A stretch of DNA of 64,000 bases from Hamiltosporidium tvaerminnensis FI-OER-3-3 (GCA_022605425.2 JAKIMF020000011.1:186001-250000), one strand, 5' to 3'. Shown: positions 11,753 through 61,616, counted from the first letter of the stretch. Notes: generated by a model not told the origin, from the letters alone. A program made the numbers and translations.

Positions 11753-12399
11753 CTTCTTTAACTTCATTATATATTATATTAAGTTTAAATTTATTGATCT
11801 TTTCAAAAAAGATTTTATACCTTTTTCTAATCGTTTGTCCTGTGTATTTTTTTTAGCATTTCATATACGGATTTTGAGCCACTCTTCTATCATTTACTAA
11901 TTAATCATTGGCAGGTTGATTTACTTAGTATGCTATTCCTCATCTGGTTATTGGTTTTAAATTTATATACGTAGGTCAAATTTCTTTTTCGCTCATTTCA
12001 GCTTGTGAGTTTTTTTTTGCATTTCGCTTTACTTTTCATGTATTTCAAGATCTGTGGGTTTTTTTATTATAAATAAACACCTGTCTTGGTGTCCTGATGT
12101 ATTTTTTCTAAATGTATAATTTATTAGTTCATTTGAATTCAAATGTTTTAGTCAAATTGGATATGTAAATTCTATACTAATAATCTAAACAAAATTAATT
12201 GTTGAATTAAATTCTTTTTATACAAATAAATTAATAAGAAACAGCCTTTATAAATTAATTCTATTGTACAAGCGTTGTGTACAAGTAAATCAAATTTAAA
12301 AAAAATATAAATAGAAAGTAAACCTTATAAAGCAATTCTTAAAAAAAAGTATATGAAAATATGCATCGATGCTATTCATAGGAAGTATTAAATTCTTAC

Positions 12400-37329: not shown

Positions 37330-40300
37330 CTACTTCTTAACCCTTAAATACTCATAATCATTTACCTCCTCTATCTTCTTAAACTCCTCAATTAACTCAT
37401 TAACAATCTCCTCCCCAACAACACTATCTCTACAATACTTCCTATGATTAACAACAAACCCACGTATCCACTCACTAACACTCATAACCTCTCCACACAC
37501 TTTTTTTCTAATAAATTCCAAATATTTATTTATCCCCTGATTATCACCACAATGTTCTCTTACAAACTTACACACCACATTTAAAATACCAGGATATTCT
37601 CCCACCCCACAAAATATTTCTTTTAAATTACCTTCTTCTATTTTACAAATACCCTTCTCATAAATATTTCTTCTATAATAAAACTTAAGACTATCCACTG
37701 ACAAATCTAATGAGTGACAAATGATATTATTTAATTGGTTGTTCGGTTCGATTTCTACTTTGTTTTTTATTTGGTTTTCTACTTTGATTTTTAATTGGTT
37801 TTTTATTTGGTTTGTATCTATTCCCTCATTTATTTCCTCATTTATTTCCTTATTTATTTCTTTTTTTATTTCTCTAGTATTACCACTATCTCTACTACTA
37901 TCCCTACTACTATCCCTACCACTATCCCTACTACTACCACTACCCTTAAACATATCCCTACTACTATCCCTAAACATATCCCTACCATTATCCCTACTAC
38001 TACACCCACTACTACACCCTCCACTACACTCATACTCCTCTACTCTCCTTCCTAACAGATTAGCTCTTCTAAAATTCTCATCAACAAAACTAATCGGTAA
38101 ATATAAATTCAACTGATAAGAAATAACAGCACGACTTAATAAAACTACAAAAACACAAAAAGCTGAATTTTCAAAACATGTTGGTTGTAACTCCATTGGT
38201 CTTATTTCTACTTTCCAACCACTCATATCACCACCTGTTATATCAGGTAATTTAAATCTCATACTTCTCCAATTGGAGCTTTGAATATTCTCAAACTCAT
38301 CAAGACAAGGAACAGGGTTATTTAGATGGTTGTTATTGTTTAGAAGGTTGTTATTAGAAGGGTTATTACTAATATAGGAGTTAGTAGTATAAGGGTTACT
38401 AGTATAAGGGTTACCAGTATAAGGGTTACTAGTATAAGGGTTACTAGTATAAGGGTTACTAATATAAGGGTTACTAGTATAAGGGTTACTAATATCCTTA
38501 GTACCATTATCACTAGTATTACTATTATCACTATTATCACTAGTATTACTAATATCTAAATTATCACTAGTATTACTAATATCTAAATTATTACTAATAT
38601 CACCACTAATATTACTAATATCTAAATTATTACTAATATCTAAATTATCACCACTAGTATTATCCCTTTTTATATCTCTGCTACTACACTCCATTCTCTT
38701 CTTCATCTCTTCTATTCTACTTATACTGTCTTCATATACAAGTATAGGGTCTCTAATGAATAGAGAACTGATATGTTTTGACATTAAAATATCTACTTTA
38801 TTATTTATAAGTAAATTATAACATTCTATATTTAAAGGTACTTTAATATCATTATATTCTTTAAGGTTTAATTCTGATTGTGAAATGAACATATCAATAG
38901 AAGAGAATCTACTTTTAAAGATACGTTGTGTGGTGGTAGGTGGGGGGTGGTTATTAGAGGGGTTGTTAGGGGGGTGTTGTGTATTAGTAGTGTTATTAAG
39001 GGGGTTTTGTTTAGTAGTGTTGTTAAGGGGGTGTTTATTAGTACTGTTGTTAAGACCCTGTTGTTTATCAGTACTAGTGTTATCACCCTGTTGTTTATTA
39101 GTACTAGTGTTAAGACCCTGTTGTTTATCAGTACTAGTGTTATCACCCTGTTGTTTATTAGTACTAGTGTTAAGACCCTTTATATAAGACTCCTTATTAT
39201 TAAGACCCTGTTGTTTATTAGTACTAGTGTTAAGACCCTGTTGTTTATTAGTACTGGTGATAACACCCTTTATATAAGACTCCTTATTATTAAGACCCTG
39301 TTGTTTATTAGTACTAGTGTTAAGACCCTGTTGTTTATCAGTACTGGTGTTAAGACCCTTTATATTACTACCACTGTCGTTAACACCCTTTATATTACTA
39401 TCACTCTCATTAACACCCCCTACTCCTATACCTTTATCATTAACACCCTTTATATTACTACCACTGGTATTAACACCCTTTATATTACTACCACTCGCAT
39501 TAACACCCCCTACTCCTATACCTTTATTATTAACACCCCTGTTACACATACCACACTCACATCCGTCAAACCCTGATCTTTCGTAGGGCGACCCTCTCTC
39601 ACTATCAGTTCTACAATCAACACTATACACTAACATATCCCATCGTGTCTCAGTATTAAGTAACCTACCTTGTGCTATAGGAGTAGCACGTGTTAGTCTT
39701 AACAGTAATGGACACATTACAGCTAACTGGTCGTATATAAGACGTGCTTCTTCTAGTTCTGAAGCTTGTAGTGTTACTTGTAAGCAACAACACCCCATTC
39801 CTTGACCCATACTGTCTATTAAGATACCGTTAACACGTCTAGTATTAGAATTGGTATTTTGGGTGTTAGAACGGTATTTGTTAGGTGTGTTACTAAAGGG
39901 GTGTTGTTTATTAGTACTGGTATTAACACCCTCTAAACTATACTCTCTATCATTAACAGGGTTATAATTACTATTCCTATCATTAACACCCTCTAAATTA
40001 CTATCCTTATCATTAACACCCTCTAAATTACTATCCTTATCATTAACACCCTCTAAATTACTATCCCTGTTATTAACACCCTCTAAATTACTATCCTTGT
40101 TATTAACACCCTCTAAATTACTATCCCTGTTATTAACACCCTCTAAATTACTATCCTTATCATTAACACCCTCCATCAAATCCTTTGTATTAATACCCTC
40201 TATACCCCCTACCTCTCTCCTATAAATAACACCCTCCCCTATTTTACCCACTACAGTTGTCATATCCGTATTCCTATCTCTCATTATACTAATATAACCT

Positions 40301-41481
40301 TCAATCTGTTTATTTCTTCTTTTTCTTATATTTTTAACAAAAGAAAAAAACCTAAAATGATTCGTTATTGCATTATCAGGAAAGAAATAAGACTTTGTTA
40401 TTTTATACTTTAAAAACCTACCACGTAACAAGAATTGTTGTCTTAGATCAGCAATATCAGTGGTGTGTTGGTTATTACTATCAGTTATATTACTATCATT
40501 GCTACTATCTATCTCATTACTACTATCTATTCCTCTATCTATTCCTTTATCTATTCCTCTATCTATTCCTCTATCTATTCCTCCATCTATTCCTCTATCT
40601 ATTCCTCTATCTATTCCTTTATCTATTCCTCTATCTATTCCTCTATCTATTCCTCTATCTATTCCTCTATCTATTCCTCTATCTATTCCTCTATCTATCC
40701 TTTCCTCATACATATCCTCATACATATCCTCATACTCTCCACCCATCTGCCCATAGAATGCTTTACCATATCCTATATTAGGAAATACAGTCATAAGTAA
40801 AGGAAACCCTTCAATTTTAAGTCTTTTAATTTCCTTTTTAATACAATTTATACGTTCTAACATATTAATTTCCATTTCTAAAAGAGAAGATACTTTAGAA
40901 GTGTAAGGTTTTATAGGTGTTGATTCTACCATATAAGAAGCAAATTCTGGTGTAAATAAAGCGGTTTTAGATTTTAAATTTTTAGTAAAATGTTCAGCTG
41001 CTAAAAGGAGTTTATAGTGGGTATTGATATTTGTAGGGATAGTATATATTTCTTTAGTACTCTCTTTAATATTATTTATTGCTTCATTTCTATAAATATT
41101 GTTTTTAATACTTTCTTCATTTCTATAAATATTATTTTTACTACTCTCTTTACTACACTCTTCAATACTCTCTTTACTACTCTCTTTACTATTCTCTTCA
41201 ATACTCTCTTTACTACTCTCCTTACTACTCTCCTTACTATTCTCTTTACTACTCTCTTTACTACTAGTGTTATAATCATTACTCATATCCATCTTATCAT
41301 ATGTCTCTTTTGCTACTAACATTACTTCAATTTCATCTCCCCATACAAACGTATTATGAAATCTATTTCTACATAAATGATATATTTCTATAAACTGTGT
41401 AATTCCAACGACTTTTAAATCATTTTTTACTTTTAATATTTTTTTGTACGGTAAAGCTTTTTGATTGCGAAGAAGACCCAT
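37330..41481 (-). CDS. GSH1: Glutamate-cysteine ligase catalytic subunit with large low-complexity insertions
   Basis: MGLL, WGDEIE, PEFASYMVESTP, DSMGQGMGCCCLQVT, KSRFSSID, FIRDP, FENIQSSNWRSMRFK, GWKVEIRPMELQ..FENSAF. CCC motif upstream. Confidence 0.95.
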   Translation of the reverse strand: MGLLRNQKALPYKKILKVKNDLKVVGITQFIEIYHLCRNRFHNTFVWGDEIEVMLVAKETYDKMDMSNDYNTSSKESSKENSKESSKESSKESIEENSKESSKESIEECSKESSKNNIYRNEESIKNNIYRNEAINNIKESTKEIYTIPTNINTHYKLLLAAEHFTKNLKSKTALFTPEFASYMVESTPIKPYTSKVSSLLEMEINMLERINCIKKEIKRLKIEGFPLLMTVFPNIGYGKAFYGQMGGEYEDMYEDMYEERIDRGIDRGIDRGIDRGIDRGIDRGIDKGIDRGIDRGIDGGIDRGIDRGIDKGIDRGIDSSNEIDSSNDSNITDSNNQHTTDIADLRQQFLLRGRFLKYKITKSYFFPDNAITNHFRFFSFVKNIRKRRNKQIEGYISIMRDRNTDMTTVVGKIGEGVIYRREVGGIEGINTKDLMEGVNDKDSNLEGVNNRDSNLEGVNNKDSNLEGVNNRDSNLEGVNDKDSNLEGVNDKDSNLEGVNDRNSNYNPVNDREYSLEGVNTSTNKQHPFSNTPNKYRSNTQNTNSNTRRVNGILIDSMGQGMGCCCLQVTLQASELEEARLIYDQLAVMCPLLLRLTRATPIAQGRLLNTETRWDMLVYSVDCRTDSERGSPYERSGFDGCECGMCNRGVNNKGIGVGGVNASGSNIKGVNTSGSNIKGVNDKGIGVGGVNESDSNIKGVNDSGSNIKGLNTSTDKQQGLNTSTNKQQGLNNKESYIKGVITSTNKQQGLNTSTNKQQGLNNKESYIKGLNTSTNKQQGDNTSTDKQQGLNTSTNKQQGDNTSTDKQQGLNNSTNKHPLNNTTKQNPLNNTTNTQHPPNNPSNNHPPPTTTQRIFKSRFSSIDMFISQSELNLKEYNDIKVPLNIECYNLLINNKVDILMSKHISSLFIRDPILVYEDSISRIEEMKKRMECSSRDIKRDNTSGDNLDISNNLDISNISGDISNNLDISNTSDNLDISNTSDNSDNSNTSDNGTKDISNPYTSNPYISNPYTSNPYTSNPYTGNPYTSNPYTTNSYISNNPSNNNLLNNNNHLNNPVPCLDEFENIQSSNWRSMRFKLPDITGGDMSGWKVEIRPMELQPTCFENSAFCVFVVLLSRAVISYQLNLYLPISFVDENFRRANLLGRRVEEYECSGGCSSGCSSRDNGRDMFRDSSRDMFKGSGSSRDSGRDSSRDSSRDSGNTREIKKEINKEINEEINEGIDTNQIKNQLKIKVENQIKNKVEIEPNNQLNNIICHSLDLSVDSLKFYYRRNIYEKGICKIEEGNLKEIFCGVGEYPGILNVVCKFVREHCGDNQGINKYLEFIRKKVCGEVMSVSEWIRGFVVNHRKYCRDSVVGEEIVNELIEEFKKIEEVNDYEYLRVKK

Positions 41482-44925: not shown

Positions 44926-45225
44926 ATGGTAAGTTTTACAATTTAAAAATAATTTTAGTCAAAAGGAACAAAGAAAGTAGGAATAACAGGAAAATATGGT
45001 ACTAGATATGGTTCATCATTAAGAAAAAGAATAAAAACATATGAAATATCTCAACATAAGAAATATGAGTGTTCTAGTTGTGGTAAACATACAGTTAAAA
45101 GAGAATCTTTTGGTATTTGGAAGTGTAAAGCTTGTAATGTTACGTTTGCTGGTGGTGCTTATGTCCCACTGACAGAGGCTTTTATTACGGCTAGAAATAA
45201 TGTTAAGCGATTGGCTGAGATTTAA
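44926..45225 (+). CDS. RPL43: 60S ribosomal protein eL43 (L37a); exons 44926-44928 and 44959-45225
   Basis: ATG, 30-nt intron GTAAGT...TAATTTTAG, then SKGTKKVGITGKYGTRYGSSLRK...CSSCGK...GIWKCKAC...AGGAY. CCCCC motif upstream. Absent from the ORF track. Confidence 0.96.
44929..44958 (+). other. 30-nt spliceosomal intron
   Basis: GTAAGTTTTACAATTTAAAAATAATTTTAG directly after the ATG; contains an in-frame TAA, and removal restores eL43. Confidence 0.93.
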
Positions 45226-46102: not shown

Positions 46103-46470
46103 CGTGAAGGACTAAAGTGTGTTAAAATAATTTTATAATTTAATATAATTTCATTTAATATAGCAATTATTAATTAAATAATATATTTTTAAAGTAAATT
46201 TAAGGTATTGGAGATGTAAGTCTGAGCAATAGTAAAAGTTTACGTAATTTCTAAAGAAAATAGAAAAAAATAGGTGGGAAATATGAAATAGTAAAGGAAT
46301 AATAAATAAATAATGTTACAGGTAATTTCATTACTTTCTTTCAAATATATTTGTGTTTCATTTATAGATTTGAAAACAAATCGATATCTTTTCAAATATA
46401 TTATTATATTATCTAATTTGAAACAGTGTGTGAAGTGGATATTTAAAATTTTATTCTAAAAAATAAACAT

Positions 46471-47082
46471 ATGTTTCTATTTATAAGTTGGGTGAGTTGT
46501 GGCTTGACACAGATATTCCTAAACAGACTAAACAAATTTAGTGAGTATGATCCGGGTATGTTGTTGGTGAATGTGGATATGCCGGACTATGCGCTGAAAA
46601 TATTTGATTTTAATATTTTAACTTCTAAAGAATTGCCTGTGGCGATGGCAAAATTGAAGGAAGAGGATTTACCGTATATGATATTACATTCGTATTATGA
46701 AGGAAATTCTAAGAATTTCTGGTTAGAGATGGATAACCAATATGGGATTAAGATTTCTTTATCGGGAAATTTATTACAGGCTAGTCGGTTTGATATTGGT
46801 GGTAAATCTAAGTTAATTGCTGCTAAGGTGTTGGGAACTAAGAATGTGCTTTTGATGCATAATAATCAGTGTTTAACTGTTGATGCAGAGCAGAGTAAAT
46901 ATAGGGAAGGATATCCGATACGGCTGAAGAAGTGTAAAAGAGATGAGCCGAAACAACTTTTTAGATTTGTGAGTGCTTTAAAGGGAGCGTGTGTTTTAAA
47001 TATGCCGGTTTGTCCAGGATTAGAAATTTTGACGGATGTTGAAAGAGTAATTGAGCATCGTATAAGTCATTTTGCTATTTAA
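46471..47082 (+). CDS. Secreted ricin-B-lectin-like protein
   Basis: Short hydrophobic signal. NNQCLTVD...LKKCKRDEPKQLFRF (C..C..QxF beta-trefoil subdomain motif). Confidence 0.75.
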   Translation: MFLFISWVSCGLTQIFLNRLNKFSEYDPGMLLVNVDMPDYALKIFDFNILTSKELPVAMAKLKEEDLPYMILHSYYEGNSKNFWLEMDNQYGIKISLSGNLLQASRFDIGGKSKLIAAKVLGTKNVLLMHNNQCLTVDAEQSKYREGYPIRLKKCKRDEPKQLFRFVSALKGACVLNMPVCPGLEILTDVERVIEHRISHFAI

Positions 47083-48058
47083 GTATTAAAATTATTCCTT
47101 GATTTTATTTATTTTATTATTGGAAATGTGTTTTTTTATTAAATCAGAGGAGAATAATCACATTAAAAACTATCTCTTGTCAATGTGTGTAAACATTTCG
47201 TGTCGAAATCCTTGCTGCCATTGTGTTAGGATATAAACCAACCGGATTTATAGACTTCTCTCCTATATCTAGAGTTACAACAGATTAAAAGAAACTAATA
47301 AAAGTTTTTGATGTGTTCATTCTAAACAATGAGAGGTAAAAGAGGAATTGAATATGTAAGTAAGTTTTTTATTGACAGAATTTATGTATTTATATTAAAA
47401 ACGTATAAAAATTTTACTGATATAACAAGGATTTTATATATATTTAGATAAGATAGTATAATCTATACAAACAAGTAAAATTTTTGTATTTATTTGTCAT
47501 ATGAAATACAATTGTATTGTAGAATAGTGCATTTAAAAAAATTGAATAAATTTATCACTTTCTCTCTATTTATTTTATAAATTTGATTATAGAAATATTA
47601 CAGATGATTCAAATTGAAATAAATATGTCAGATAGATAATCTTATTCTAGATACTATAGTTGTATTTGGAAATAATGCAAAAAATGTAATTTTACTTCTT
47701 GAATCTAATTTTTTGTTTTGATTATTTATAATACAGATTTATTGTAGAAATCTTGAACATACTTTTCATTTCATTAAGCCTATTTCGAAGTTAAAAAAAG
47801 TCCAAATTTATTTCCTTAATGTTTCAACTGTTAACCTTTTAAAATTTAGATATTAAAAACGTGTTTATTTTTTATAAGTATCTATTGAATTCTCATATGA
47901 TATTTCAGCGGTAAAAAAAAGAAAATAATAGATGTAAATTAAAACTATATCTGATATGATATCATAAATATTCCTAAACACGTTTCATTGTAAATAAATA
48001 CGCATCAGTAAAAACGGTAATATATAAATATTTTTCGTATCTTCTTAAATATAGAAAA

Positions 48059-49129
48059 ATGATGGAAAAATATTGTTTAATATTAATAATCTGTATAAAA
48101 CATATTTATACATCAGAATTGGAGTATTTTTTAAATACTGATATCAAAATAATGTTTAGTGCGTATGAACACTTTCATTTGGCTTTAAAAACAGCCGATT
48201 CTAGTAAGTATCCTTTTATTGGAATAAGCAGACACTTGAATGCCAAAGAATATAACTTTGATGACCGTGCACGTATAACTAAAAATAGCGATAGATATGA
48301 AATAAGTATAGGGGAGGAAATGTTATGTAAAGAAAAGAAAACCATAATAAAGTGCGGTGAAACGGGCAATAGTGCATGGAGCATTGATAAAAGAGATTTC
48401 GGTTATACCATATCACAAGACAAAATGTGTATTACAAAAAAAGACAGTGACGAAATCATACTTAGTAAATGTTCAGACACAGAAGATCAATTATTTGATT
48501 TCAAAAGATCTGCTGGAATAGGAAAGTGTTCTGAAAACCAAGATGTAAGTCAAAAAAACGAAAAAATGTCGAAACAAAATAAATCAGATACAAGCAAAAA
48601 ATCAGACAACAGCAAAAAACCAGACAAAAGCAAAAAATCGGAAACAAAAAAGAAATCATATACAAACAAGAGATCTAAGAAAGCAGATGAGGAGTCTACT
48701 TCTGATTCTAAAGATCAAGAAGATTCTAAAATATCGGAAGAAAAAGATCAAACAAAAATTTCTTTATCGTTGGATTGCAAAGGCGATGAATGCAAATTTA
48801 GGAGAATTTCCCGGAACAAAGATAATTCTAAACCTGATTTTAACGATTTTCGTTCTTTAGAAGACTCGAACTCATTTCAAGATCTCCTGATTCCGATAGA
48901 AACACCTCGAAATACTTTATTACCAGGTATTCGAAATCCATATAGACCAAACATAGAATCTTATTTAATTCCAAACAACCAAAATTTTATTCAAGAAAAT
49001 GTTTCGTTATATACAAACATTCCAAGGCCATTCAAATCCCATGATGTTTCGAATCTAAAATATCCGCTATCTTCTTCAGAAATTGAGCGCGGAATGAAAA
49101 AATTCGATTCATTTTTTTTTAGAAATTAA
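48059..49129 (+). CDS. PTP4: Ricin-B-lectin-like polar tube protein 4-like
   Basis: Signal peptide, ELEYFLNTDIKIMFS..RH...YEISIGEEMLC...CITKK..LSKCSDTEDQLFDF, then K/S/D-rich tail. Directly upstream of a PTP5-like gene. Symbol from recalled similarity. Confidence 0.65.
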   Translation: MMEKYCLILIICIKHIYTSELEYFLNTDIKIMFSAYEHFHLALKTADSSKYPFIGISRHLNAKEYNFDDRARITKNSDRYEISIGEEMLCKEKKTIIKCGETGNSAWSIDKRDFGYTISQDKMCITKKDSDEIILSKCSDTEDQLFDFKRSAGIGKCSENQDVSQKNEKMSKQNKSDTSKKSDNSKKPDKSKKSETKKKSYTNKRSKKADEESTSDSKDQEDSKISEEKDQTKISLSLDCKGDECKFRRISRNKDNSKPDFNDFRSLEDSNSFQDLLIPIETPRNTLLPGIRNPYRPNIESYLIPNNQNFIQENVSLYTNIPRPFKSHDVSNLKYPLSSSEIERGMKKFDSFFFRN

Positions 49130-49385
49130 AGTTTCTTTATTTCTCTACTTTTTAGATAAATTTTGATTTTATCAACATTTCTACATTCAAATGCTTTATT
49201 TGATAAACGATTGGCATTTTTTGTTTTAAATTCACAAATATTTTTTTTTGGTTTTGAAAATTCAAAACTTTAAATATTTTTGTTTTCATTATTTATTCTA
49301 CTCTCTGGATATTTCAATAAAAAAATCAACATTTTTGTTATGAAACTTGAATTTTTAATTTTTAAATCCTAAAAATACACAACAT

Positions 49386-50132
49386 ATGTTTCAAATATTT
49401 CTAATTCTAACAACGTATATATTTGCAAGAAATATTGTAGATTCTTTTTTAGGAAAGAAATTAAATATATTTTTTTCGGGTATGGAAAACTATTTTTTAG
49501 CTGAGAACTTAACAGATTTCAGCAATAAGCCATTTATAATACAGAATAGACTCGTAGAAGATGAGAATCTGGTTGTAACAAATAAATGTGAATTACTTAA
49601 AAATGGTTTGGAGTATGAAATAAAAATAGGAGATTCTAAATTGTGTTCAGATAAAGAAAATGTAAGAAAATGCGATGCTAAAGAAGTTCAACCATGGAAA
49701 ATCCAAAAGATGACATTTGGATTTTCCGTAGCACGAAACGATAATTGCATTACACGAGATGAAACAGGAAAGATCAAACTTTCTAAATGCGACACTTCAA
49801 AGAATCAAATTCTATTTATTTTAAAGTTAGAAGATTCTGAAAAATGCTTGGAAATGACGGGTAATTTAAATGAAAAACCTAAAAATGTACAAGAATTAGC
49901 CTATCGTCGTAAATTAGCTCCATTAATAGAAAAGGGTGTTCTTAAACCCACAGAAACTTCTAATACAAGTAAAAACCCAGCTGATCTTAGAAAATTGTTA
50001 GACAAAAAATTCCCTGACAAAACAAAAAATCAAAAGAGTAAAAAAGTATACGCAAGTCTTTGGAATAACACATGGGGATTCAAAATACCGAGTTTATCTA
50101 TTGGTGACTGGACAAAACTTTTCTGCGAATAA
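49386..50132 (+). CDS. PTP5: Ricin-B-lectin-like polar tube protein 5-like
   Basis: Signal peptide, FLGKKLNI..LAENLTDFSNKPFII..SKLC..WKIQKMTFGF..CIT..LSKC, K-rich tail ending LWNNTWGF..W..FC. Paralogous to 48059. Symbol from recalled similarity. Confidence 0.68.
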   Translation: MFQIFLILTTYIFARNIVDSFLGKKLNIFFSGMENYFLAENLTDFSNKPFIIQNRLVEDENLVVTNKCELLKNGLEYEIKIGDSKLCSDKENVRKCDAKEVQPWKIQKMTFGFSVARNDNCITRDETGKIKLSKCDTSKNQILFILKLEDSEKCLEMTGNLNEKPKNVQELAYRRKLAPLIEKGVLKPTETSNTSKNPADLRKLLDKKFPDKTKNQKSKKVYASLWNNTWGFKIPSLSIGDWTKLFCE

Positions 50133-50238
50133 AATTTTATTATCTTTACTTTTTATTCAATCATATCACATTTGGTTTCTTTTTTTGAATCATTGTTTCA
50201 CATTTTTTGAATAAAAATCACATTTCTTTTATTTTCAA

Positions 50239-50952
50239 ATGGCTCTTTTATTTGGTCTAAAATTCTTCCAAATTTACTTATTCCCTCTGTATGTCTTTAC
50301 TCGTTCAGAATATCTAAAATATATTTTAGATGATAGAGCTATGATATTGTTGACAGGTATGCCGTTAGAAAGAATGGCAATTGGCCGTAAACACAACGGT
50401 GTTAAAATACTAAATATGGAAAGTTTAATAAACAATCGAAATTATAGATTTGTTGCTGGAATACACGGTAATTCAAAAACAGGATATATGATTCATATTG
50501 GAAAAAATTTTCTTAAAATTGATAAAGATGGATATGTCGTAGGGACACGTTTTGAAAACGATGCCAATCTTTTTGACATTGAACATACCAAATTTGGATA
50601 TAAAATTATTTACAATAAAAAATGTGTAACCAAGGGCACTGAAACCGGCACAGTTTTTCTTTCAGATTGTTTTGACGACGGATCCCACAATTCTGTTTTC
50701 CAAAGATTTGATTTTATTTCTTTAAAGAAACCCAACAACAGCAAAGCATTATCAAAAGATAAAATGTGTAAAAAACCCGAAAAAAATACCGATATTTCCA
50801 ATTTAGATGTAAATCTTGAACAAAAGTTTTACGACTCGATATTTGACAAAAATTTTAGTTCAAGTTTTGATTTTATAGTAAGTTTAGCAAAATGTCGTGG
50901 AAACGACGTAGATTGTATTTGCTTAAAAGCGGTAAATAATCCGTGTAAATAA
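50239..50952 (+). CDS. Secreted ricin-B-lectin-like protein
   Basis: Signal peptide; FDIEHTKFGYKIIYNKKCVTK..LSDC..QRFDF; Cys-rich C-terminus. Confidence 0.75.
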   Translation: MALLFGLKFFQIYLFPLYVFTRSEYLKYILDDRAMILLTGMPLERMAIGRKHNGVKILNMESLINNRNYRFVAGIHGNSKTGYMIHIGKNFLKIDKDGYVVGTRFENDANLFDIEHTKFGYKIIYNKKCVTKGTETGTVFLSDCFDDGSHNSVFQRFDFISLKKPNNSKALSKDKMCKKPEKNTDISNLDVNLEQKFYDSIFDKNFSSSFDFIVSLAKCRGNDVDCICLKAVNNPCK

Positions 50953-51213
50953 AATGCAATAAATTTCAAAAAATATTTAGAAAACCCAAAGATTTTTAAT
51001 GAATAAACAATAAAAAGAATTTAAATTTTTATTTTTTTTAATATTTTCTTAAAAATGAGAAAAACTCAAAGATTTTTAATGTGTAAACAGCAGGAAAAAT
51101 ATTTAAATTTTAAATTATTTTCTTAAAATTGAGAAAAAACTCAAAGATTTTTAATCACTGAACAGCGGGAAAAATATTTTAATTTTAAATTATTTCCTTA
51201 AAAAAAGGAAAAC

Positions 51214-51822
51214 TCAGAGATTTTTAATAAAACGTTGAAAATCTTCTATATTTGCCTTTTCTAACAATTCTTTCAATTCGTTTTTATAAACATTATTTCT
51301 TATTTCTTTATGTTCCATCATTTTGTACAAATCCGTATTATTTTTGCCACAATTACTTTTTAAAAAAGTATCTCTCATTTCACTAACACTTTGAACATAA
51401 TTTACCATTTTTATAGAACTATCAAGAAGATTATCCATTTCCTTTTCAATCTTATTAATTTGTAAATATTCATTATACTTATATTTTTGAATATCCAATT
51501 TATTCTGTAATATTTGTTTCTCTCGTATTATATTTGTCTCTTCTTTTACCAACATTAAATATTCATTAATTTTTTTTTGTACATTTTCTTCGATTCGTAA
51601 ATCCGTAATTTTTCTTTCAAATTTGAATGACACAGGAAATCTAAAAACATTTCGTAAAACAAAATTTTCAAAAATATAAAAATTTTTTTCAAATAATTTT
51701 AATGTTTCTTCATCTGCGTTATTCTCATTTAAAGTTTGAATTATATTTTCTTTGAGTTCTTTTATAAAACAAGAAGGAATAAAACCAAAAAATTCTATTT
51801 CATCGGTTTCTATTGAATGCAT
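51214..51822 (-). CDS. MIS12: Kinetochore protein Mis12/Mtw1 family
   Basis: EFFGFIPSCFI and FEKNFYIFENFVLRNVFRFP match Mis12 motifs; coiled-coil C-terminus. Confidence 0.8.
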   Translation of the reverse strand: MHSIETDEIEFFGFIPSCFIKELKENIIQTLNENNADEETLKLFEKNFYIFENFVLRNVFRFPVSFKFERKITDLRIEENVQKKINEYLMLVKEETNIIREKQILQNKLDIQKYKYNEYLQINKIEKEMDNLLDSSIKMVNYVQSVSEMRDTFLKSNCGKNNTDLYKMMEHKEIRNNVYKNELKELLEKANIEDFQRFIKNL

Positions 51823-52899
51823 TTAAGGACAAAATTATTTGGAAAATAAATAAAAATACTTTGAATGTAAAAAAAAAATGGAAGATTTAAAAATATTTAT
51901 TTAGGTAGGAGATTGGAAAGAAATATTTTATTACGTTTGATTGTTAGATTAAGAAATATATTTGAAAGTGAATAAGAATTGAATCCAACAATTAAAATTA
52001 TAATTAAATTCAATTTATAAAAGAAGAAAATTAAAATATTTTTTAAATTACAGAAGAATTAAATCAAACAATTAAAATAATAATTAAATTCAATCTTAAA
52101 TATTTGAAAATAAACTTTTATCAAATTTTTAAAAATAATTATCAAAACTAATTTACAGAAAATAAAAAAGAAAATATTTATTTTTACAAATATTTAAAAA
52201 AACCAAACTCAGTATTTGTTTGATTTTTTGTAAGTTTAAATTATTTTTTATTAGAATTTTAAATTTCGTTACCTAATATTTTAGTATTTATCTTCCTATA
52301 TAACGTATATTTCTCAATTTAATCTTATCATTTAAAAATATGAAGAATTATAGTAAATCTCTTTTTTTTTTAATGTATCGACATATAATAATATCTTCTA
52401 ATTTATATTTGAATTTGTGTATAAAAATAATATTTTAGACCAAGTCATAAGAAATAGTTTTTATTCTTTTAATTTTATGCGTTTAATATATTCTTTTATT
52501 CTCAGTAGTACTTGTAGCTTTTTATTTATATTTCTGAAGTATTTTAGTAGAATTTATTACAATTATATTCTTTGGAATTATTTAAAACTTAATTGCTTAA
52601 TAACTTAGGTATTTCTACTTACAAAGTATATATTTTAAGTTTACTTAGTTTATAAAACAGAATAGAACATAATTTTTATCATTTTAAAATTTTTTATTTA
52701 ATTTCTTATCTAAATTAAATATATCAAATTTATTATATTAAATAATTAGACTAATTTGATCTGTAAATTTGCTTATGAAAAGTTTGTTTCTATTATAGAA
52801 TATATAAATCTGTAAAAATTAAATTCTTTGAATGTAATTCAAATGCTTGATTCACTTATAAAGAACAGAATATTTTAAGAATTTGAATTAATTTAAAAG

Positions 52900-53614
52900 T
52901 ATCACATCTTTTTAAAATAGTGGCAAGTGTTATATTTGTTTTTATGACATTAACGCAGTTCTAGGTTTAACATAAATGACTGCTACCCCAACACTCCATC
53001 GGTAACCCCAGCGATACCTACGTCCCAAAGCTTTTCATTTACCAGGTGTGTAGAACCTAATTAATAGGCGAGGCAGTTGCCCGGAGTTCGTTAATGTCCG
53101 TTGCATGGAGTGTGATCGAAGGCCGAAGCCCCCCTAAGCTCCCCCAAGACTATGCAGCGTTCCCAAGTACTCTACACTTTATGAATCCAATAAACTTCTA
53201 GCTAAGATATATTCCAGAGATTTACATGGGGTCTACCTAGACAGTGCAATGTCATACCAACAGGTATAACCTGCTACTTAGCTTTCCTGGCTTTTAATGG
53301 TTTTTTGTTTTGTATCTGCCAGGCGCTAAGTCTTCTAACCCGAGTAAGCAAGGCTAGGTTTCCATGCTTTTACATGGCAATTACCTACATGTTCAGTTGC
53401 GGTCTGCAATCTGGTTACATAAAAAACTACAAATAAATTTGTAGAAAAAGTTTCTCCATTTCTTAGACCTCTTCTCCTCATAAAAACTCCCATGGAACAA
53501 CCGAAGATGTAGTGTGGTTTTATTCCCACCAAAAATCCAAACAATGATCTCACACCAGTTTCACACACTCATTGCCAAGCAGAAAGTTTTTTATGTGGTC
53601 ATCCTCGCTCCACA
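52900..53614. repeat. Dispersed ~715-bp element, copy 2 (GC-richer)
   Basis: Direct repeat of 42602-43320; two C-UUCG-G hairpins and long stems on the minus strand. Confidence 0.9.
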
Positions 53615-55065
53615 GTTTTAAGAATTTAAAAATAAATTATTTTTTTAAAATTATAATTTTCAAGATTTTTGGTTAAAAAATCTTAATACAATTAATATTT
53701 TAAATATTTCTTTAAATTCTATTTTTAAAATTATATTTTTCGAGATTTTTTAACCAAAAATCTTAATACAATTTATCTTTTAAATATTTCTTTAAATGTT
53801 ATTTTTTAGGAACGAAAACAATATTTATAATTTACTAGCTATTTTGAATTCTTTAAAAAAGTTTTAAGTATTAATTTTAAAGACCTGGCAGGTATATATT
53901 TCTATTAAATACCAACTCTAATATTTTTGTTGGGTTTTTATACAATGATGGGAAAAAAAACCAAATTTATGATTTATGATACAAAAAATCTCAAAATAAA
54001 TTCTATGCTTCTCTAAATTACACTTTAATTTTTGCTAATCTTCCTCTTATAAACAAGGTAAAGACTTGATATTTTTTAAAATTTTAAAAGTTACGGATTG
54101 GTATTGTATTACACCAAATCCTTGACCTTACCTATTACAAAAAGAGAATTTTCGCAATTTATTAGAATTTCTAAAAAAAATATTTTTTTATTGTGGTCTG
54201 TAATCATTTTTCTAAATTAATTTTACTTTTTTTTGCTGGTCTTAAATCATTTTTTTATGGATCTAAAGTCGATAGATGATTCTTCTGTGATTTATATTTT
54301 TTTTATTTCATAAATTTTACCATTCAATTTATTTTTGTTTAAGTATTTGACTCATTTAATGATGCTAAAAATATATCTATGAATAAAAAAAATTAATTTA
54401 TCCTTTTATTGATTATTACAATTATTAGTCATTGAAAGATTTGGAGAAATTAAATTTGCGAGTCCTCTAAATTAGAATTTATTAGTTTATCAATTATAAT
54501 GAATAATTAATATTTATAAAGTTTAGTTTAAAAGTATTTGGAATAAGAAAGATGTTGGCAAATGAAATTTAATCTTTTATTTCAAATTAATTGTTCGATA
54601 TTATTTTACGGAATGACTTTTTAAGTAATAATTTGAACTACAAAATCTAAGATTTATATTTTTTTAAATACCTTTACATCTTTTTCTTTAAAATAATTGA
54701 ATCATTTAACTTTTATTTGAGAAAAAGGTTTGACTAAAATGTATACTAAGTTGGTTTGTATGGATATATCGTATAATTAGTATAACGAATGTTAAAAACA
54801 CGACACATGTTTCACAATTTAATAAATTGTATTTCTTTAAATGGAAATAAAATTAAAACAAATTTTGATATATTTTTTGTGTAGGTTTTTATAACCGAGA
54901 AACTCTATTTCGTTTTTTGATAGGTTTGCAGATATTTTAGTGTTTTTTTTAATTTTTGTTCTTTGTTTCAAAACCAGTTACATATCTAAGATTTCAATAG
55001 TAAAAAATGTAAAACGGTGTTTTAAGAATGGGAGATTTTAAAAAGATATTTCGCAACAAATAAAC

Positions 55066-55953
55066 ATGCTTATCGCATACATATGTTTAATTCGTACATT
55101 ATCTACGGATGTTCTGAATACACCTTTAAATATTACATTGATATCAAGTGACCAGGTACTAGCAGCATATGAAAAGCAGTCGATTGTATTTACTGAAAAA
55201 GAAAAGTTCAAAAATATTGATTACGACGGTCTGTCGTCGATAGAAAAAAATGGAAATTTATATCGTTTAAGATTTAACAAATTGTTTGTTTGTATTGATG
55301 GAAATACTAAAGAATTGTCGCTGTGTCCTTCAACGTCTTTGTATACCAAAGATTTTCAAATATTTCGGGTTGGTAAATGCACGGTGATATCTTCAGAATC
55401 TAAATGTCTAACTGTTCTTAAGAACGAGGTTTTTCCTTTTAAAAATACATTTAAAGGCCATTTTATGTCGTGTATACCTAATGATAAGCAACAGTGCTTC
55501 GACTTTAAGCACAATATGTCTGATGAATCAATCAAGTCGAAAAATGAAAGCGATTCTAATGCAAATGAAATGAGTTCGGATGCAAATTCTGAACAAAGTA
55601 GTGAGAACAATACATATGATGATTATACTAAGGGATATAACGAAAAGGATAGTAACCGCCAGAAAAAACCCAAGCAAAAATCTCCCAAACCATTTCCTAA
55701 TAAATTATCATCAACCTTGCCTAAAAAAAAATGGGATATGGATTATGTCAATAAGAATTTAGACGATGCCCATCACCTGGTAGCGAAGACCAACCCAGAA
55801 CTAGATATTTCAACAAAAAGATATTATCCGGAATGTTTCTATGGTTATGACAACATGACAATGTTTTTAAATGATGTAATGCCTAGCTTAAGAAAAATGA
55901 AAAAGAAGTACTGTTGGCATAATATGAATCAAGATAGTTGGCATTTTTCATAA
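55066..55953 (+). CDS. Secreted ricin-B-lectin-like protein
   Basis: Signal peptide; YRLRFNKLFVCID..LSLC, SKCLTV..FMSC..QQCFDF; S/N/E-rich linker and W-rich C-terminus. Confidence 0.75.
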   Translation: MLIAYICLIRTLSTDVLNTPLNITLISSDQVLAAYEKQSIVFTEKEKFKNIDYDGLSSIEKNGNLYRLRFNKLFVCIDGNTKELSLCPSTSLYTKDFQIFRVGKCTVISSESKCLTVLKNEVFPFKNTFKGHFMSCIPNDKQQCFDFKHNMSDESIKSKNESDSNANEMSSDANSEQSSENNTYDDYTKGYNEKDSNRQKKPKQKSPKPFPNKLSSTLPKKKWDMDYVNKNLDDAHHLVAKTNPELDISTKRYYPECFYGYDNMTMFLNDVMPSLRKMKKKYCWHNMNQDSWHFS

Positions 55954-57727
55954 ATTTTATAAAAATAAAATTATATTTCTAAATATTTAATTAAATACTT
56001 ACGTTAAGATTAAAATCAAAACTTTATACTATTTGACTATTAATTTATAATACATTCTTATGAAGAAGTAAAATTTTACTAGTTTATCACCAATTTTTTG
56101 TAAAATATTATAGATGCATATAACATATAAAAAACGGTTATCTTAGTTTCTAATTAAAGATTTATATGAGAAATTATTATTTATAATTATTTCGTGAATA
56201 ATTCTTTAATTAGGAAGCAATCAAACCTTTTTTTATATGTTATATGCATCTATAATATTATATATGCTGCTTAAAGAATAACTATATTTTATTAAAAATA
56301 TTTTTAATATTCAATATCTATCTCATATTTAATTACAAATATATAAATTATTTGATCAATCTTTTAAGATAAGAATATAAATAGATTAAATTGTATGCTG
56401 AAAGGAAAATATAATTTAGATCTAAAATTAGCCTTTTAAAACACATTTGAACAATAACATATACGAAATTAGATTACATTTAAAAATAACATTCGAAGAT
56501 TCGCTATCTTTGAAGTTAATACATTAATATAAATTTATTTAGATAATTTTCTGATTTTTTTTCATATTTTAAATAAAACTTTGTGTTTTTATAAATACAA
56601 CGAGAAACTTTACCAGAAAATCCCAGTTCAAAAATATATTTGTTTAAATTTAATAATATTTGACAAAACAAGTAATTTAGGCACAGAAAAGATAATCTCT
56701 AACTGTACAAAGACCTTTTTTAATCATTATGTTCCTTAGTTCCAAATTTGAATATTTTGAACTTATTTATCAATTTAAAAGATAATATATGTCCCGTATT
56801 TGTTTAAATATATTATAGATTTCTTCATGTTTTTATGATTAAAAATTTCTTCGTATGTTTTAATTTATCCTATTATTGGTAATATTCTATAATAATATCA
56901 TTTATGAGATTTCAGATGTCCCAAAACGTTATACATTTAAATATATTTGGATTGACTTCTTCAACCACAAAATATTAAATTAAAAGGTTCTTAGCACATT
57001 TAGGGAGTTAAACTGATCGTTTAAAAATTTAATACAAAAATATACGATAGATACACTTTTAAATAGTTAAAATACCTTAAAGTAATCAAATCAGAGAAAA
57101 GCACACACAATAATCAATTAGTAAGTTGTAATATGACAGATAATATACACATAAAACCAAACAAATCATAATAAGTAATTCTTACTCCAACGACAAAGAA
57201 TATACCATAATTCAAAATATTTACTTTAGTTTTATCTGAATCGAACTCTTAATTCTATTTCAAAAGCAAATGGATATATTAACTTCTAAAAATTCATTTT
57301 AGGATAAGAAATTATTTATAATTAGATAAAAACAAATTGTCTTTAAAGTCTCTTTAATTCTGTCTAGAATCTTAAAGTCACAACCCTTAACCTTGAGTCT
57401 TTGAATTAATTATTAATATAAATTAATATTGTCATTCTATAATACATTTTTATCCTAAATATAGCAGAACACAGCTTCATCACATATTTTATAGTTTTTT
57501 ATAAATCTATTCAAAGAATCTCTGAAATAGATAAATATTATTTCTAGCTTTATATAACTTTGAATATCTTAAATCTTTATACAACAATTATAAGGATTAA
57601 AACTTATAAATTATCAACTTCTGAGTCTCTCTAACGAAAACCCAGGGTAAAAAAAATACATTTTATATTTTTTAAATCCATAAAATTTAAAATTTTTATA
57701 AATAATTTCTTCCCCTTCAAAAAAAAA

Positions 57728-58114
57728 ATGATGAATCCATTAGCTGCTACATGTAAAGCAATAAACAACGCCAATCGTATAGGAAAAAGAAGCGTATTAT
57801 TACGTACATCCACAAACATGACATCTGCATTCCTAGAACTTATGCTTAAACACCAATATATATCTTCTCTTACCTATATAAACGACCATCGTAATAACAA
57901 AGTTATTGTTTCTCTTAACGGTCGTTTGAATAAATGTGGTGCTATTTGTCCCAACTATAATATCAAAGTTTCTGATGTAGAAGGTTTCCGTAACAGAATT
58001 TTACCTGCTCGTCAGTTTGGACACCTTGTTATTACTAGTACTAAGGGTGTTATTGATCATAATACTGCTATACAAGAACATACAGGTGGCAAGGTATTGG
58101 GATTTTTCTATTAA
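57728..58114 (+). CDS. RPS22: 40S ribosomal protein uS8 (S22/S15a)
   Basis: INNA..GKRSVLLR, LNGRLNKCGAICP, LPARQFGHLVITSTKGVIDH, GGKVLGFFY. CCCC motif upstream. Confidence 0.97.
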   Translation: MMNPLAATCKAINNANRIGKRSVLLRTSTNMTSAFLELMLKHQYISSLTYINDHRNNKVIVSLNGRLNKCGAICPNYNIKVSDVEGFRNRILPARQFGHLVITSTKGVIDHNTAIQEHTGGKVLGFFY

Positions 58115-59149
58115 AGATTTCTTTTATTTATTTCTCTTTTCTATGCTTTCCATCCTTGCTTTTTATATTTATTATTTCCTCTTTTATTTCTTTTCTTCTT
58201 TCCTTGTTTATGCTCTTTTTTCTATAATTTTTTTATTATGATTTCTATTTCTATAATTTATTTTATAAATTTTCATGGTATGATTTTCTCTTAACTTATA
58301 ATTCTATTTCATAACTTATATTTCTATTTCTTAAATTTTATTTATATTATTCTTAGCCTATAATTTTTATTTCTTGAGTTCATATTTTATGATTTTATCT
58401 TAATTTCAATTTTGTTTCAATTTTTTAATGAAGAAAGAAAAACTTAAGATTTCAAGAAAGTGAAATTTATTAAAAAAAATCATAAGAAATATAAAGAGAA
58501 ATGAATTACTAATTAATAATTATAAAATATTAACTGAATTTGGTTTCTCAATCCTTACTTTTCATTATAAAATAAGATTTAAATTTACATTTAAAATAAA
58601 TTTATTATTCTTCTATTGTTTTTAATAACAGTATTTAAAGAAGACTTGTTTAAGCCTGAGAAATATACAAACAAATTAACTATATCTATAAATCGAATTA
58701 ACATATAACATTATTAAATACCGAGTTTTTTTCTTCTTGCTTTATTTTGGTCTATTTTAAATTTTTCTTTGTGTTTGATTGTTGCTTAATTTTAGATATT
58801 TTACATATTTTGATTTACATATTTTATTCAATGATTTTGTATTTTTTTGTTTAAGATCTTCTCTTCCGTGACTAAGTTGTAAATTAAAGAAATATATTAT
58901 TCGATAAACTTCTATTACAGGAATATATTCTTATATATCCTCCCCTGTTCTCGTTTGAAAGCGTTGCAACTAGTCCCAATCTCTTCTTTGGTATAAAGAA
59001 GTAGTTTAGACTGTGTTGAGCACTTTGATTGTATAATTTCCTTTATTCTTGTACTGATTTTGAGATTCTGAAGGTAGATTTAGTGATATTTTGTTTTGAT
59101 ATCCATCTAGAGCTTCAAATTCATGGCTATATACTACTAATAAATAAGA

Positions 59150-60150
59150 TCATAATCCTTGATAAATAAGCTACCTGATTAAATTTCCTTTCAAAAATTT
59201 TCGAAGAATTTTTCAAAGTAGTAACCAGCAAAAAAGTGTAATCATATTAAATTTAGCGCAAAAAAACATATTTGATTTTTGATCTCGAATTTCTGCATCG
59301 GGTTTTCCTGTCTTACAATCTTTTTGCTGGATACTTATTTTCAAGGATTTCTTGTAGTGATAGCTCTTAATTCGTTTTGTAGATTTAAAGTTATATATCT
59401 CATGCGCAGGTAAGAGTATATTGCGGTGTTATTTTGTCGTCTAGTAAATTCATCGTCGATATTTTTTTCATATCCAGTTGCCAAACGCATCATCGCTTTT
59501 CCAAAGTTTCCATGATGTAACATGTTCCTTTAACCAACTGAAAAGTATTAGTATACGTAATATGACATAAATTATCTTTTCAGATGCCTAGTTTTATTTT
59601 TCTTTTGAGTTTGTGAGAAGCATTTACACTTAAAAACGTCTATTTACCTCATTATATAACTTTGAATGCAATCTTATATTTAATTTCTTATAATATTACT
59701 TAATAAGCTTCTTAGATTTTCCGTGTAATAACTTATTTTATCAATATTTTATTCGAATAAAGCAAATACTAGTTTAAAGTATATTTTTCATCATTTTAAA
59801 CAGCGAGATCCTACTCTCTAGTTAATATTTCTTGATTTGTTTTCAGATGTTTACCAGTCTACTGTGAATGTCCTTCCCTATTCAACCCAAAGAAAACTAC
59901 TTAAAAATTGAAAACTAGATCTATACAGAGTTATTTATATCCCAGACCAAAACGTACCTTTTTCTGCACCTCTTTCTGCAGGCATAGAATCATCTAACTT
60001 AAAGAAATCATCTTTTATAAGTCTAAATAATCACACGAATTAATTACTAACGATGTGCATCTTTATTACATTTCATGAAAATTTTTCGAGTTTCAAATTT
60101 GGTTCGACGAGGTTTTTCAACACTCGTTGGATAATAACGATTCGGGTAAC
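59150..60150 (-). mobile_element. Old degenerate copy of the RLE-type retrotransposon
   Basis: ORF 59341-59523 GKAMMRLATGYEKNIDDEFTRRQN resembles GKTVDHLATRCEKMLGHDYTRRHN. SLQEILENKY resembles SVQEILDNEY. GATTTCTTTAAGTTAGATGATTC resembles GACTTCTCTAAGTTAGATGATGC. Confidence 0.78.
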
Positions 60151-60854
60151 AACCAGTATGTTAATTAAAGAAATCTTTGAAATTTAAACTAAATTATATT
60201 TCTTTGACATATTTCTGGATATAAAGAGTTAAATCATGATTTAAGTATACTAGACTGTGAATATAATGTATATCTTGAATGAATAACTGTACGGAGAGTT
60301 TATATATCTTTATATAAGAATCATACACAGAATTCAAAGTTTTCAAGTTTGTAATATAAAATTCATATGCGTGTTTCAAGAGAAGAGCGGTTTATGAGTA
60401 CATATTACCCCTTTCTACTAGAATTAATAGATTAAAAACCCAATATTTTCATCTCATACTTTTTGAAGAAATTAAAATTATTTAGTTCATTTATTCATAT
60501 AACACTGTTATTAATTTACCCGAACATATGATTCGTATTAAATAATTATAGAAAACAAAACGAGAAAAGAGAAGGAATAAATAGTAAAAACAAGAAAATA
60601 AATTCCAAATATTATATGTATGGTATTATTTTCCAAAGGAATATTGCAAGAATATAAAGTTAAAAGATAGTAAATTATAAAATTAAAGTTTTTCACCAAT
60701 TTATAAAAACAAAATTGTATTTTATTTAACTTAAATTTTATTGAAGATAATTTGAACTCAAATATCTTTTTTTACGTTATTTTATAAATTCAATTTTTTT
60801 TATTGTTAACGATATACTATTACTATTAATTGGAATGATATTGGTATTTCTTTT

Positions 60855-61616
60855 TTAAGTAACTCTGGTTTTTTCATCTGCCCATCTCAATGGTATTCCG
60901 TGATGGTAGGCATGGAAAGCCCATGTAGAGTGTCTATCAGATGGATGATACGAATAAAAGGTATAAAACGCTCTGTTAGAGGTTTCACCAACGAGATGTA
61001 CATGTGAGTTGTGGTGTCTGGCTGTATCCTGATCAGTGGTATAATTTGGATCTGATTTATGTTTACCGAGATGTTTAAGATGCTCCTTTTCCGTACGTTC
61101 TATAAGTTCGGGGTTTTCGCTCATATTACTGTGGTGGTGATGATGATGATGATGATTTGTTTCGCTTGGGTTAGAAATATGTTCCTTTTCTATTTTTCTA
61201 TCGTGAAGTTCGTCAGACTTGGTATGATTGTTTCCTTTAATACGTAAGAGTTTATCAGTAATTTTTTCAAACTTATCGTACTCTCCACATTTAAGAAAAG
61301 CCAGCCCAGTACGATCAGCAGCAAGACATTTATCATTTAACATAAAAGTGACAGTACCATCATCATTCCGTATCATAAGAACTGCTGTACCATTTGGTCC
61401 AAATATAGCAGCACTATTCTTTTCAGTCAAACAACCAGCCGAACTGCACAATCCTACTTTATGTGTACCTTGTTTCTCTAAATGGAAATGCAATGCGTCT
61501 TTCTTTTTTACCAGACCCGGTGTCTTCTCATACACACCAATATATTCTGGATGGTTTAATCTTTTCAATCTAAATTTTATGAACAAAAATCCCGGTATAA
61601 AAAGAAATATTAGCAT
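60855..61616 (-). CDS. Secreted ricin-B-lectin-like protein with His-rich tail (possibly PTP6-like)
   Basis: Signal peptide; LCSSAGCLTE, NDKCLAAD..FLKC; tail with HHHHHHHH and many further His. Confidence 0.7.
   Translation of the reverse strand: MLIFLFIPGFLFIKFRLKRLNHPEYIGVYEKTPGLVKKKDALHFHLEKQGTHKVGLCSSAGCLTEKNSAAIFGPNGTAVLMIRNDDGTVTFMLNDKCLAADRTGLAFLKCGEYDKFEKITDKLLRIKGNNHTKSDELHDRKIEKEHISNPSETNHHHHHHHHSNMSENPELIERTEKEHLKHLGKHKSDPNYTTDQDTARHHNSHVHLVGETSNRAFYTFYSYHPSDRHSTWAFHAYHHGIPLRWADEKTRVT

Follow-up and report, generated by a model that had tools for sequence, protein, structure and literature searches.

The locus and its genes

We have analysed the surroundings of a pair of polar tube protein genes, ptp4 and ptp5, in Hamiltosporidium tvaerminnensis FI-OER-3-3, a microsporidian which parasitises water fleas (Daphnia). 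The window, that is, the whole stretch of DNA analysed, is 64,000 nucleotides long (GCA_022605425.2 JAKIMF020000011.1:186001-250000; C16:186001-250000) and belongs to a genome of 21.6 Mb in 17 contigs with about 23% G+C; the genes of interest lie between positions 46471 and 61616. A reading made from the letters of the window alone (below, the sequence-only reading) had proposed six signal-peptide proteins with a common motif and different tails, among them a PTP4/5-like pair within a larger ricin-B-like array of uncharacterised paralogs. Our analysis makes it very probable that the PTP4-PTP5 locus lies within an ancient syntenic block of five genes, A, PTP4, PTP5, B and C, each of whose products has a predicted signal peptide, one disulfide-bearing beta-trefoil domain of the ricin-B-lectin (RBL) type and a tail of its own. 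These five genes and a sixth, whose membership of the family is unproven, are referred to by group or by their lowest coordinate:

46471-47082, plus strand: group A gene, 203 residues; predicted ricin-type beta-trefoil and a short helical tail with two cysteines; directly upstream of PTP4
48059-49129, plus strand: PTP4 orthologue, 356 residues; RBL domain at about residues 20-170 and a disordered K/S/D-rich tail
49386-50132, plus strand: PTP5 orthologue, 248 residues; RBL domain, K-rich linker and a C-terminal W-rich motif ending in FC
50239-50952, plus strand: group B gene, 237 residues; third tandem RBL paralog, with an 'LE.KF..SIFDK' segment and a Cys-rich end
55066-55953, plus strand: group C gene, 295 residues; RBL paralog; S/N/D/E-rich linker, and a strongly conserved module of about 70 residues at the C-terminus
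60855-61616, minus strand: His-rich predicted-secreted protein, 253 residues; N-terminal part of about 130 residues possibly a beta-trefoil; a run of eight histidines (H8) and scattered further ones

All six open reading frames (ORFs) are found where the sequence-only reading had placed them; as it had also noted, the first four lie in tandem on one strand, and five of the six are on the plus strand. Their N-termini are all hydrophobic (best 10-residue Kyte-Doolittle mean 1.9-2.7, a heuristic for a signal peptide), in agreement with the proposal that the products are signal-peptide proteins. The C-[LIV]-[TA]...C...(Q)xF motif said to be common to them was written as the regular expression C[LIV][TA]-x(8-24)-C-x(3-10)-[QDE]x[FWL], which was composed after the motif had been seen. 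It has exactly six matches among the window's 409 ORFs of at least 40 residues, and all six are array ORFs; the chance expectation, from shuffles of 19 long ORFs, is 0.135 matches per round. In an alignment of the six proteins the sole invariant column is the Cys of C-[LIV]-[TA]. The tails diverge as had been described, being K/S/D-rich in 48059, K/W-rich in 49386, Cys-rich in 50239 and marked by the H8 run in 60855. By pairwise BLASTP, 48059, 49386 and 50239 are paralogous (E 3e-25 to 6e-6) and 55066 is weakly so (8e-5), and the paralogy of 46471 and 60855 receives no support from this comparison. A protein word-index search with 48059 returned only the protein itself. Four RNA runs whose species label differs from that of the DNA, and which are probably from the host, gave 0 reads at 46400-52000, a figure that says nothing about expression.

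Identity of the PTP4 and PTP5 genes

A profile of the three tandem domains was run against 1.84 billion proteins in an exhaustive HMMER search. It matched 101, of which 60 reached E<=1e-10, and nearly all of the 101 are proteins of 150-500 residues with the domain at the N-terminus. Among the matches are WAQ68438.1, named 'PTP4 [Anncaliia algerae]' (P0016; E 1.8e-25), and a cluster (P0061) which contains WAQ68439.1, 'PTP5 [Anncaliia algerae]'. Also found were EDEG_03857 and EDEG_03856 (P0004 and P0024), two genes that adjoin each other in Edhazardia aedis, EROM_071040 of Encephalitozoon romaleae (P0068) and TCON_2618 of A. contejeani (P0005), which UniRef names 'Ricin B lectin domain-containing protein'. 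In a quick tree of 90 rows, 48059 and A. algerae PTP4 stand on one side, and 49386 and 50239 stand with EROM_071040 and A. algerae PTP5 on the other; within the latter, 49386 and A. algerae PTP5 fall in a subclade with 91% support in the approximate likelihood-ratio test (aLRT). Hidden Markov models (HMMs) were seeded only with PTP4s and PTP5s that are identified by name or by position, from five species, and 48059 scored 179.5 bits with the PTP4 model and 117.0 with that of PTP5. When the E. romaleae proteins were taken as queries, the best match of its PTP5 (EROM_071040) was 49386 (238 residues, E 1e-22) and that of the product of the gene upstream was 48059 (E 9e-29).

The tail of 49386, ...LWNNTWGF...DWTKLFCE, carries what may be called the PTP5 signature, a K-rich stretch followed by LW...W...W...FC. 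This signature occurs in nearly all of 24 PTP5-side proteins, including A. algerae PTP5 and EROM_071040, and in none of the 16 PTP4-side tails inspected; as a whole, the tails compared came from 27 PTP5-side and 17 PTP4-side proteins. The terminal cysteine of 49386, C247, is invariant in the PTP5 alignment. 48059 lies directly upstream of 49386 on the same strand, and the order PTP4 then PTP5 is the same in Binucleata daphniae, in E. aedis and E. romaleae, and on a contig from a public run (L016). From the profile, the tree, the seed HMMs, the tail and the best hits, 48059 is assigned as the orthologue of PTP4 and 49386 as that of PTP5, and the PTP4/5-like pair that had been proposed is present at the locus.

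The PTP4 orthologues have five conserved cysteines, an odd number, and the PTP5 orthologues have six, of which one is at the extreme C-terminus, a pattern which suggests intermolecular disulfides. Such bonds are known for other polar tube proteins. A complex prediction for the PTP4 domain with mature PTP5 gave a score of 0.03, which speaks neither for nor against a complex.

The flanking groups and the predicted beta-trefoil fold

Group A comprises 46471 and nine homologues, among them B. daphniae BDAP_001671, Gurleya vavrai GVAV_003201 and C. obtusa COBT_002117, and its alignment with the PTP4/5 family (hhalign 87.7%, E 3e-6) covers the last 57 columns only. The AlphaFold2 model of 46471, made from a 10-sequence alignment, has 12 strands, a predicted local distance difference test (pLDDT) value of 80.9 and a predicted template modelling (pTM) score of 0.78. 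With this model Foldseek found 118 PDB chains at E<=1e-3, the top matches being botulinum HA33, ThreeFoil, Symfoil designs, the Clitocybe ricin-B-like lectin (CNL) and IL-18, and the nearest ESM Atlas clusters were RicinB_lectin_2 and Ricin_B_lectin, with template modelling (TM) scores of 0.56-0.62. Modelling places group A among the ricin-type beta-trefoils; the group A sequence profile itself found no match among the PDB sequences.

Group B, that is 50239 and its B. daphniae and E. aedis orthologues, aligns with the PTP4/5 family over 132 columns (hhalign 98.7%, E 3e-16), and group C, 55066 with two orthologues, does so over 125 columns (98.1%, E 1e-13). Each makes a cross-species clade of its own in a careful tree of 46 rows, with support of 98/92 for B and 96/70 for C, and 55066 matches the family HMM with E 3e-11 among the window's ORFs. 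By sequence, 50239 and 55066 are divergent homologues of the PTP4/5 domain. A 35-sequence profile of the PTP4/5/B domain, compared with the PDB sequences, gave the B chains of abrin-a (E 0.0054) and of the TKL-1 lectin (0.016) as best matches, with CdtC, agglutinin B and ricin B lower down. The ESM Atlas feature matches of 55066 at 0.90 all belong to the beta-trefoil clan, which we treat as a lead only. The classical (QxW)3 motif is absent; only the last repeat keeps a Q-x-F, strictly so in four of the six proteins, with QIL in 49386 and DKF in 60855. Searches of the organism's own genome for paralogs of 46471 and of 55066 gave nothing significant.

The larger ricin-B-like array that had been envisaged stands for 50239 and 55066, by hhalign, and for 46471, by its beta-trefoil model, and does not stand for 60855. 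The structural check had a similar outcome: it was positive for 46471, with its 118 PDB matches, and a single-sequence AlphaFold2 model of residues 1-135 of 60855 was unusable (pLDDT 42.7).

The tails, which differ so much from one paralog to the next, are kept within each orthologue group: the helical end with two cysteines in A, the W-rich FC end in PTP5, the 'LE.KF..SIFDK' segment and terminal cysteines in B, and the C-terminal module in C. This module, of about 70 residues (55690-55950, plus strand; ...NLDDAHH...PECFYGY...FLND..P.L.K.K.KYC), is 47% identical to its B. daphniae counterpart over 81 residues (E 1e-22), is better conserved than the lectin domain of the same protein and matched no Pfam family. 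The public protein for 50239 (P0003, 203 residues) takes an internal Met as its start and is thus without the hydrophobic N-terminus; the alignment with the B. daphniae orthologue favours the longer model of 237 residues.

Gene order in other microsporidia

In B. daphniae (L011) a single strand carries the glutamate-cysteine ligase gene GCS (4901-7423), A (8951-9631; E 8e-20 to 46471), PTP4 (10001-11107), PTP5 (11301-12047), B (12429-13109; E 2e-18 to 50239) and C (13269-14174; E 1e-22 to 55066), and two more RBL-like genes come after C. The order A, PTP4, PTP5, B, C is found again on contig L016 (B, hhalign 95%; C, E 2e-21). Parts of it occur elsewhere: E. aedis has PTP4, PTP5 and B in order (B, E 1e-10 to 50239), G. 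vavrai (L015) has GCS, the ribosomal protein gene RPL43, A and PTP4, and contig L017 has RPL43 and then A. In E. romaleae, PTP4 and PTP5 are followed by a PTP4/5-like gene of 170 residues (L013 8834-9346, hhalign 97.5%), and 7 kb further on stands RPL43, after which comes a gene that is group A-like over its first 86 residues (91%, E 1e-6). In G. vavrai and on L017 the group A gene thus comes directly after RPL43, as does the A-like gene in E. romaleae. GCS precedes the array on the array's own strand in B. daphniae and G. vavrai and is inverted in the H. tvaerminnensis window.

By sequence and position, A, PTP4, PTP5, B and C form a five-gene block of one-to-one orthologues whose order has been kept across several genera and which are single-copy here. 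The sequence-only reading had looked upon the neighbours of the pair as uncharacterised paralogs; they are not loose extra copies but ancient single-copy lineages, with ordered one-to-one orthologues in other microsporidia. The block recurs in full in B. daphniae and on L016 and in part in E. aedis, G. vavrai and E. romaleae. The PTP5 gene of B. daphniae, an intact ORF of 248 residues (JBLVQH010000011.1 11301-12047, plus strand), is omitted from the public gene calls.

Further RBL-like genes in the genome

Past the end of the window, at C16:250307-257674, lie three more lectin-like predicted-secreted genes (L007 1307-1780, minus; 3844-5244, minus; 7169-8674, plus), with a secreted peptide of 93 residues among them. 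They carry a C-L-[TAK]...C...QxF/EFEW motif, and therefore the array extends to at least nine genes. Compared with the PTP4/5 family they reach hhalign 88.9%, 83.4% and 7.7%, and one matches Pfam Ricin_B with E 0.018. Together with 60855 these three genes look lineage-specific.

A second RBL-like cluster, of four genes with hhalign 87-96% to the PTP4/5 family, is present on contig C1 (670946-681138):

L008 6946-8886, plus strand: RBL-like gene
L009 1944-2555, minus strand: RBL-like gene
L009 5499-6041, plus strand: RBL-like gene
L009 6614-7138, plus strand: RBL-like gene

One of the four products has a Pro/Gln-rich tail of about 500 residues. This cluster may be the counterpart of the Encephalitozoon cluster of RBLL/PTP6 genes of the ECU08_1700 type.

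Alternative explanations

Several observations weigh against a single conserved RBL block at this locus. The Pfam Ricin_B_lectin gathering score is reached by no array member, the best being 46471 (E 0.0087; 16.7 vs 29 bits), and PTP4, PTP5, B and C would be beta-trefoils by homology, from marginal PDB and Pfam matches and from published models (PMC10759460). The deep split between PTP4 and PTP5 is weak in the quick tree (aLRT 64), and in the careful tree the PTP4/PTP5 backbone becomes a polytomy once long-branch groups are added. The domain of 49386 is ambiguous, since it scores higher with the PTP4-seed HMM (124.0 bits) than with the PTP5-seed HMM (99.8). Of the expected grouping of 48059 and 49386 with PTP4 and PTP5, the two sides of the quick tree and the 91% subclade hold, the deep split being weakly supported; because the backbone of the careful tree collapses, the orthology of 49386 rests on its tail, its position and the best hits. 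The block is not universal: in G. vavrai the 8.5 kb after PTP4 contain none of PTP5, B and C. In the window itself the array is broken up by an unrelated gene of 202 residues, a dispersed repeat and a uS8 gene, and 60855 stays at or below 4.4% by hhalign against the PTP4/5 family and every other group.

Could the array be young? A recent tandem expansion of a PTP4/5-like gene, specific to Hamiltosporidium and driven by host-parasite conflict, would accord with the lineage-specific expansions which RBL families do undergo in Nosema and Vairimorpha (PMC9224602, PMC10759460) and with the abundance of repeats and transposon remains in the window. However, the array paralogs are just 17-31% identical to one another, groups B and C make their cross-species clades, and for each of A, PTP4, PTP5, B and C the corresponding position in other genera holds an orthologue that is closer. 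For these five genes a recent species-specific expansion is contradicted by the cross-genus positional orthologues, and we consider it highly improbable. It is harder to judge what the neighbours of PTP4 and PTP5 do. Perhaps A, B, C and 60855 encode lectins of the spore wall or secreted effectors aimed at the host, which share with PTP4 and PTP5 only ancestry and neighbourhood. The RBLs of S. lophii are released on germination (PMC3749934); NbRBL28 enters the host nucleus (PMC9224602), and for RBLL-1 an interaction with the spore wall is cited in PMC10759460. The tails of PTP4 and PTP5, moreover, are wholly unlike those of A, B and C. On the other hand, one-to-one orthology and an order that is stable over deep divergence would be less expected of fast-evolving effectors than of housekeeping parts in a conserved apparatus; families of effectors usually vary in copy number by lineage, and RBLs co-purify with PTP3 in V. 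necatrix (PMC10931468). An effector or spore-wall role for these genes appears to us a tenable explanation, somewhat short of an even chance.

More doubt surrounds 60855, whose product is 100% identical to H. tvaerminnensis CWI37_0653p0030. The sequence-only reading had counted it as a sixth paralog, and this was not borne out: hhalign gave about 4%, the AlphaFold2 model failed and only leads based on ESM were left. Might it be an orphan His-rich secreted protein from outside the family, its C-L-A...C...xF match being due to chance or convergence? The low hhalign ceiling holds for every single member as well as for every group, no Pfam family is matched, and neither the metagenome scan nor the organism's own genome contains a relative, the word-index search with its N-terminus having found only itself; there is no homologue beyond its own 90% cluster. 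It has no positional orthologue in B. daphniae or on L016, and 5 kb separate it from group C, whose gene runs on the other strand. Yet its ESM Atlas features reach 0.91 to Ricin_B_lectin clusters and its ten best feature matches are all of the beta-trefoil clan, and the Atlas ESM model has TM scores of 0.70-0.79 (by query), over 115-129 residues, to FGF, RicinB_lectin_2 and oomycete ricin-B clusters. It also bears two CL[TA] motifs about 35 residues apart, at trefoil spacing, and it is placed between group C and three further lectin-like genes. Its signal peptide, small RBL domain and His-rich tail would fit the published description of the Nosema bombycis protein NbPTP6 (PMC7493173), which it resembles in length (253 vs 247 residues), in the N-terminal signal peptide, in being His-rich and maybe in an RBL-type domain; PTP6 itself has since been counted among the RBLs (PMC10759460). 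It differs in position, as the homologues published for PTP6 belong to the cluster of the ECU08_1700 type, to which the second RBL cluster on contig C1 more likely corresponds. All told, an orphan origin of 60855 seems a serious contender, albeit not the one we would favour; its family membership is unproven and its fold possibly a beta-trefoil.

Possible functions and known systems

If the ancient five-gene block is accepted, how might it have arisen and what might it do? The five genes would derive from tandem duplication before the compared lineages split, and since each has kept its own tail, they would be subfunctionalised and not redundant. We hypothesize that their products enter the secretory pathway during sporogony, perhaps under common regulation, and that the beta-trefoil serves for adhesion, by lectin-like or protein binding, with the tails placing each paralog at a different site of the extrusion apparatus or the spore surface. 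At the tip of the polar tube PTP4 would attach to host receptors, as in Encephalitozoon hellem, where it is located at the tip and binds host cells (PMC10759460), and PTP5 would be associated with the tube through its W-rich, Cys-terminated tail. For groups A, B and C a place among the polar-tube parts, in the one invasion module which the sequence-only reading had suggested, is an inference. In its boldest form it would make them unrecognised core components of the polar tube or of an anchoring or tip complex, joined in one module with PTP4 and PTP5 since early microsporidia, with the group C module as a new docking or assembly domain; we regard this as unlikely.

The closest known system is the microsporidian PTP4/PTP5 pair itself (E. 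cuniculi ECU07_1090/ECU07_1080; A. algerae WAQ68438.1/WAQ68439.1), with the same adjacency and strand, a signal peptide and one RBL-type domain in each protein, an acidic or charged tail in the first and a K-rich tail with a W-rich, Cys-terminated end in the second. The pair in H. tvaerminnensis differs in being seen with the conserved neighbours A, B and C and in being known from sequence alone, and its PTP4 tail is K/S/D-rich whereas that of E. cuniculi is glutamate-rich (PMC10229552). The microsporidian RBL/RBLL clusters (PMC3749934, PMC9224602, PMC10759460) are likewise tandem arrays of small secreted beta-trefoils of very low identity with a degenerate QxW (QxF), a degeneration also reported for the NbRBLs (PMC9224602). 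The published clusters are mostly described as species-specific duplications, however, and the H. tvaerminnensis block consists of five old single-copy lineages with their order kept. With the B chains of R-type lectins such as ricin and abrin (PF00652, CBM13) the array proteins have in common the beta-trefoil (modelled for group A), conserved Cys pairs and a Q-x-aromatic in the last repeat. They differ in having a single trefoil instead of a tandem pair, in keeping one of the three QxW motifs, in scoring below the Pfam threshold and in having no linked toxic A chain; their sugar binding is putative.

Much of this was to be expected, and the locus in itself is an ordinary feature of a microsporidian genome. 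It has been published that ptp4 and ptp5 invariably lie side by side, that PTP4-6 have RBL folds (PMC10759460) and that RBL genes stand in syntenic clusters (PMC3749934); the new element, a modest one, is the conserved five-gene block. Its presence beside ptp4/ptp5 across distant microsporidia makes A, B and C a short list of candidate partners or of extra components of the tube or spore surface. To our knowledge, among the polar tube proteins a host receptor has been identified for PTP4 alone, and the list of the tube's components still has gaps. The order RPL43, A, PTP4, PTP5, B, C can also serve as a positional rule for annotating very divergent genes in new genomes, and it has already revealed the uncalled PTP5 of B. 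daphniae and the truncated gene model of 50239.

Neighbouring features of the window

The remaining features around and within the array are the following:

37330-41481, minus strand: glutamate-cysteine ligase gene (GSH1/GCS), swollen by repeats; tblastn with G. vavrai GCS gives blocks up to 75% identical, E 6e-40
44959-45222, plus strand: coding exon of RPL43 (eL43/L37ae), immediately before group A; 67% identical to G. vavrai RPL43 by tblastn, E 1.5e-36
51214-51822, minus strand: helical protein of 202 residues between groups B and C, not of the family; no Pfam match above noise
near 52900-53614: dispersed element inside the array span, not of the family
57728-58114: uS8 gene, not of the family; Pfam Ribosomal_S8, E 2e-14

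The gene at 51214-51822 has no counterpart at the same position in B. daphniae. An ORF of 47 residues at 36539-36679 (plus strand) matches the PTP4/5 family HMM weakly (E 0.0012 among the 409 ORFs) and is probably noise or a relic. The RPL43 block contains no in-frame ORF of at least 45 residues that starts with ATG; a short 5' intron probably sets its start codon apart, as is the case in other ribosomal protein genes of microsporidia.

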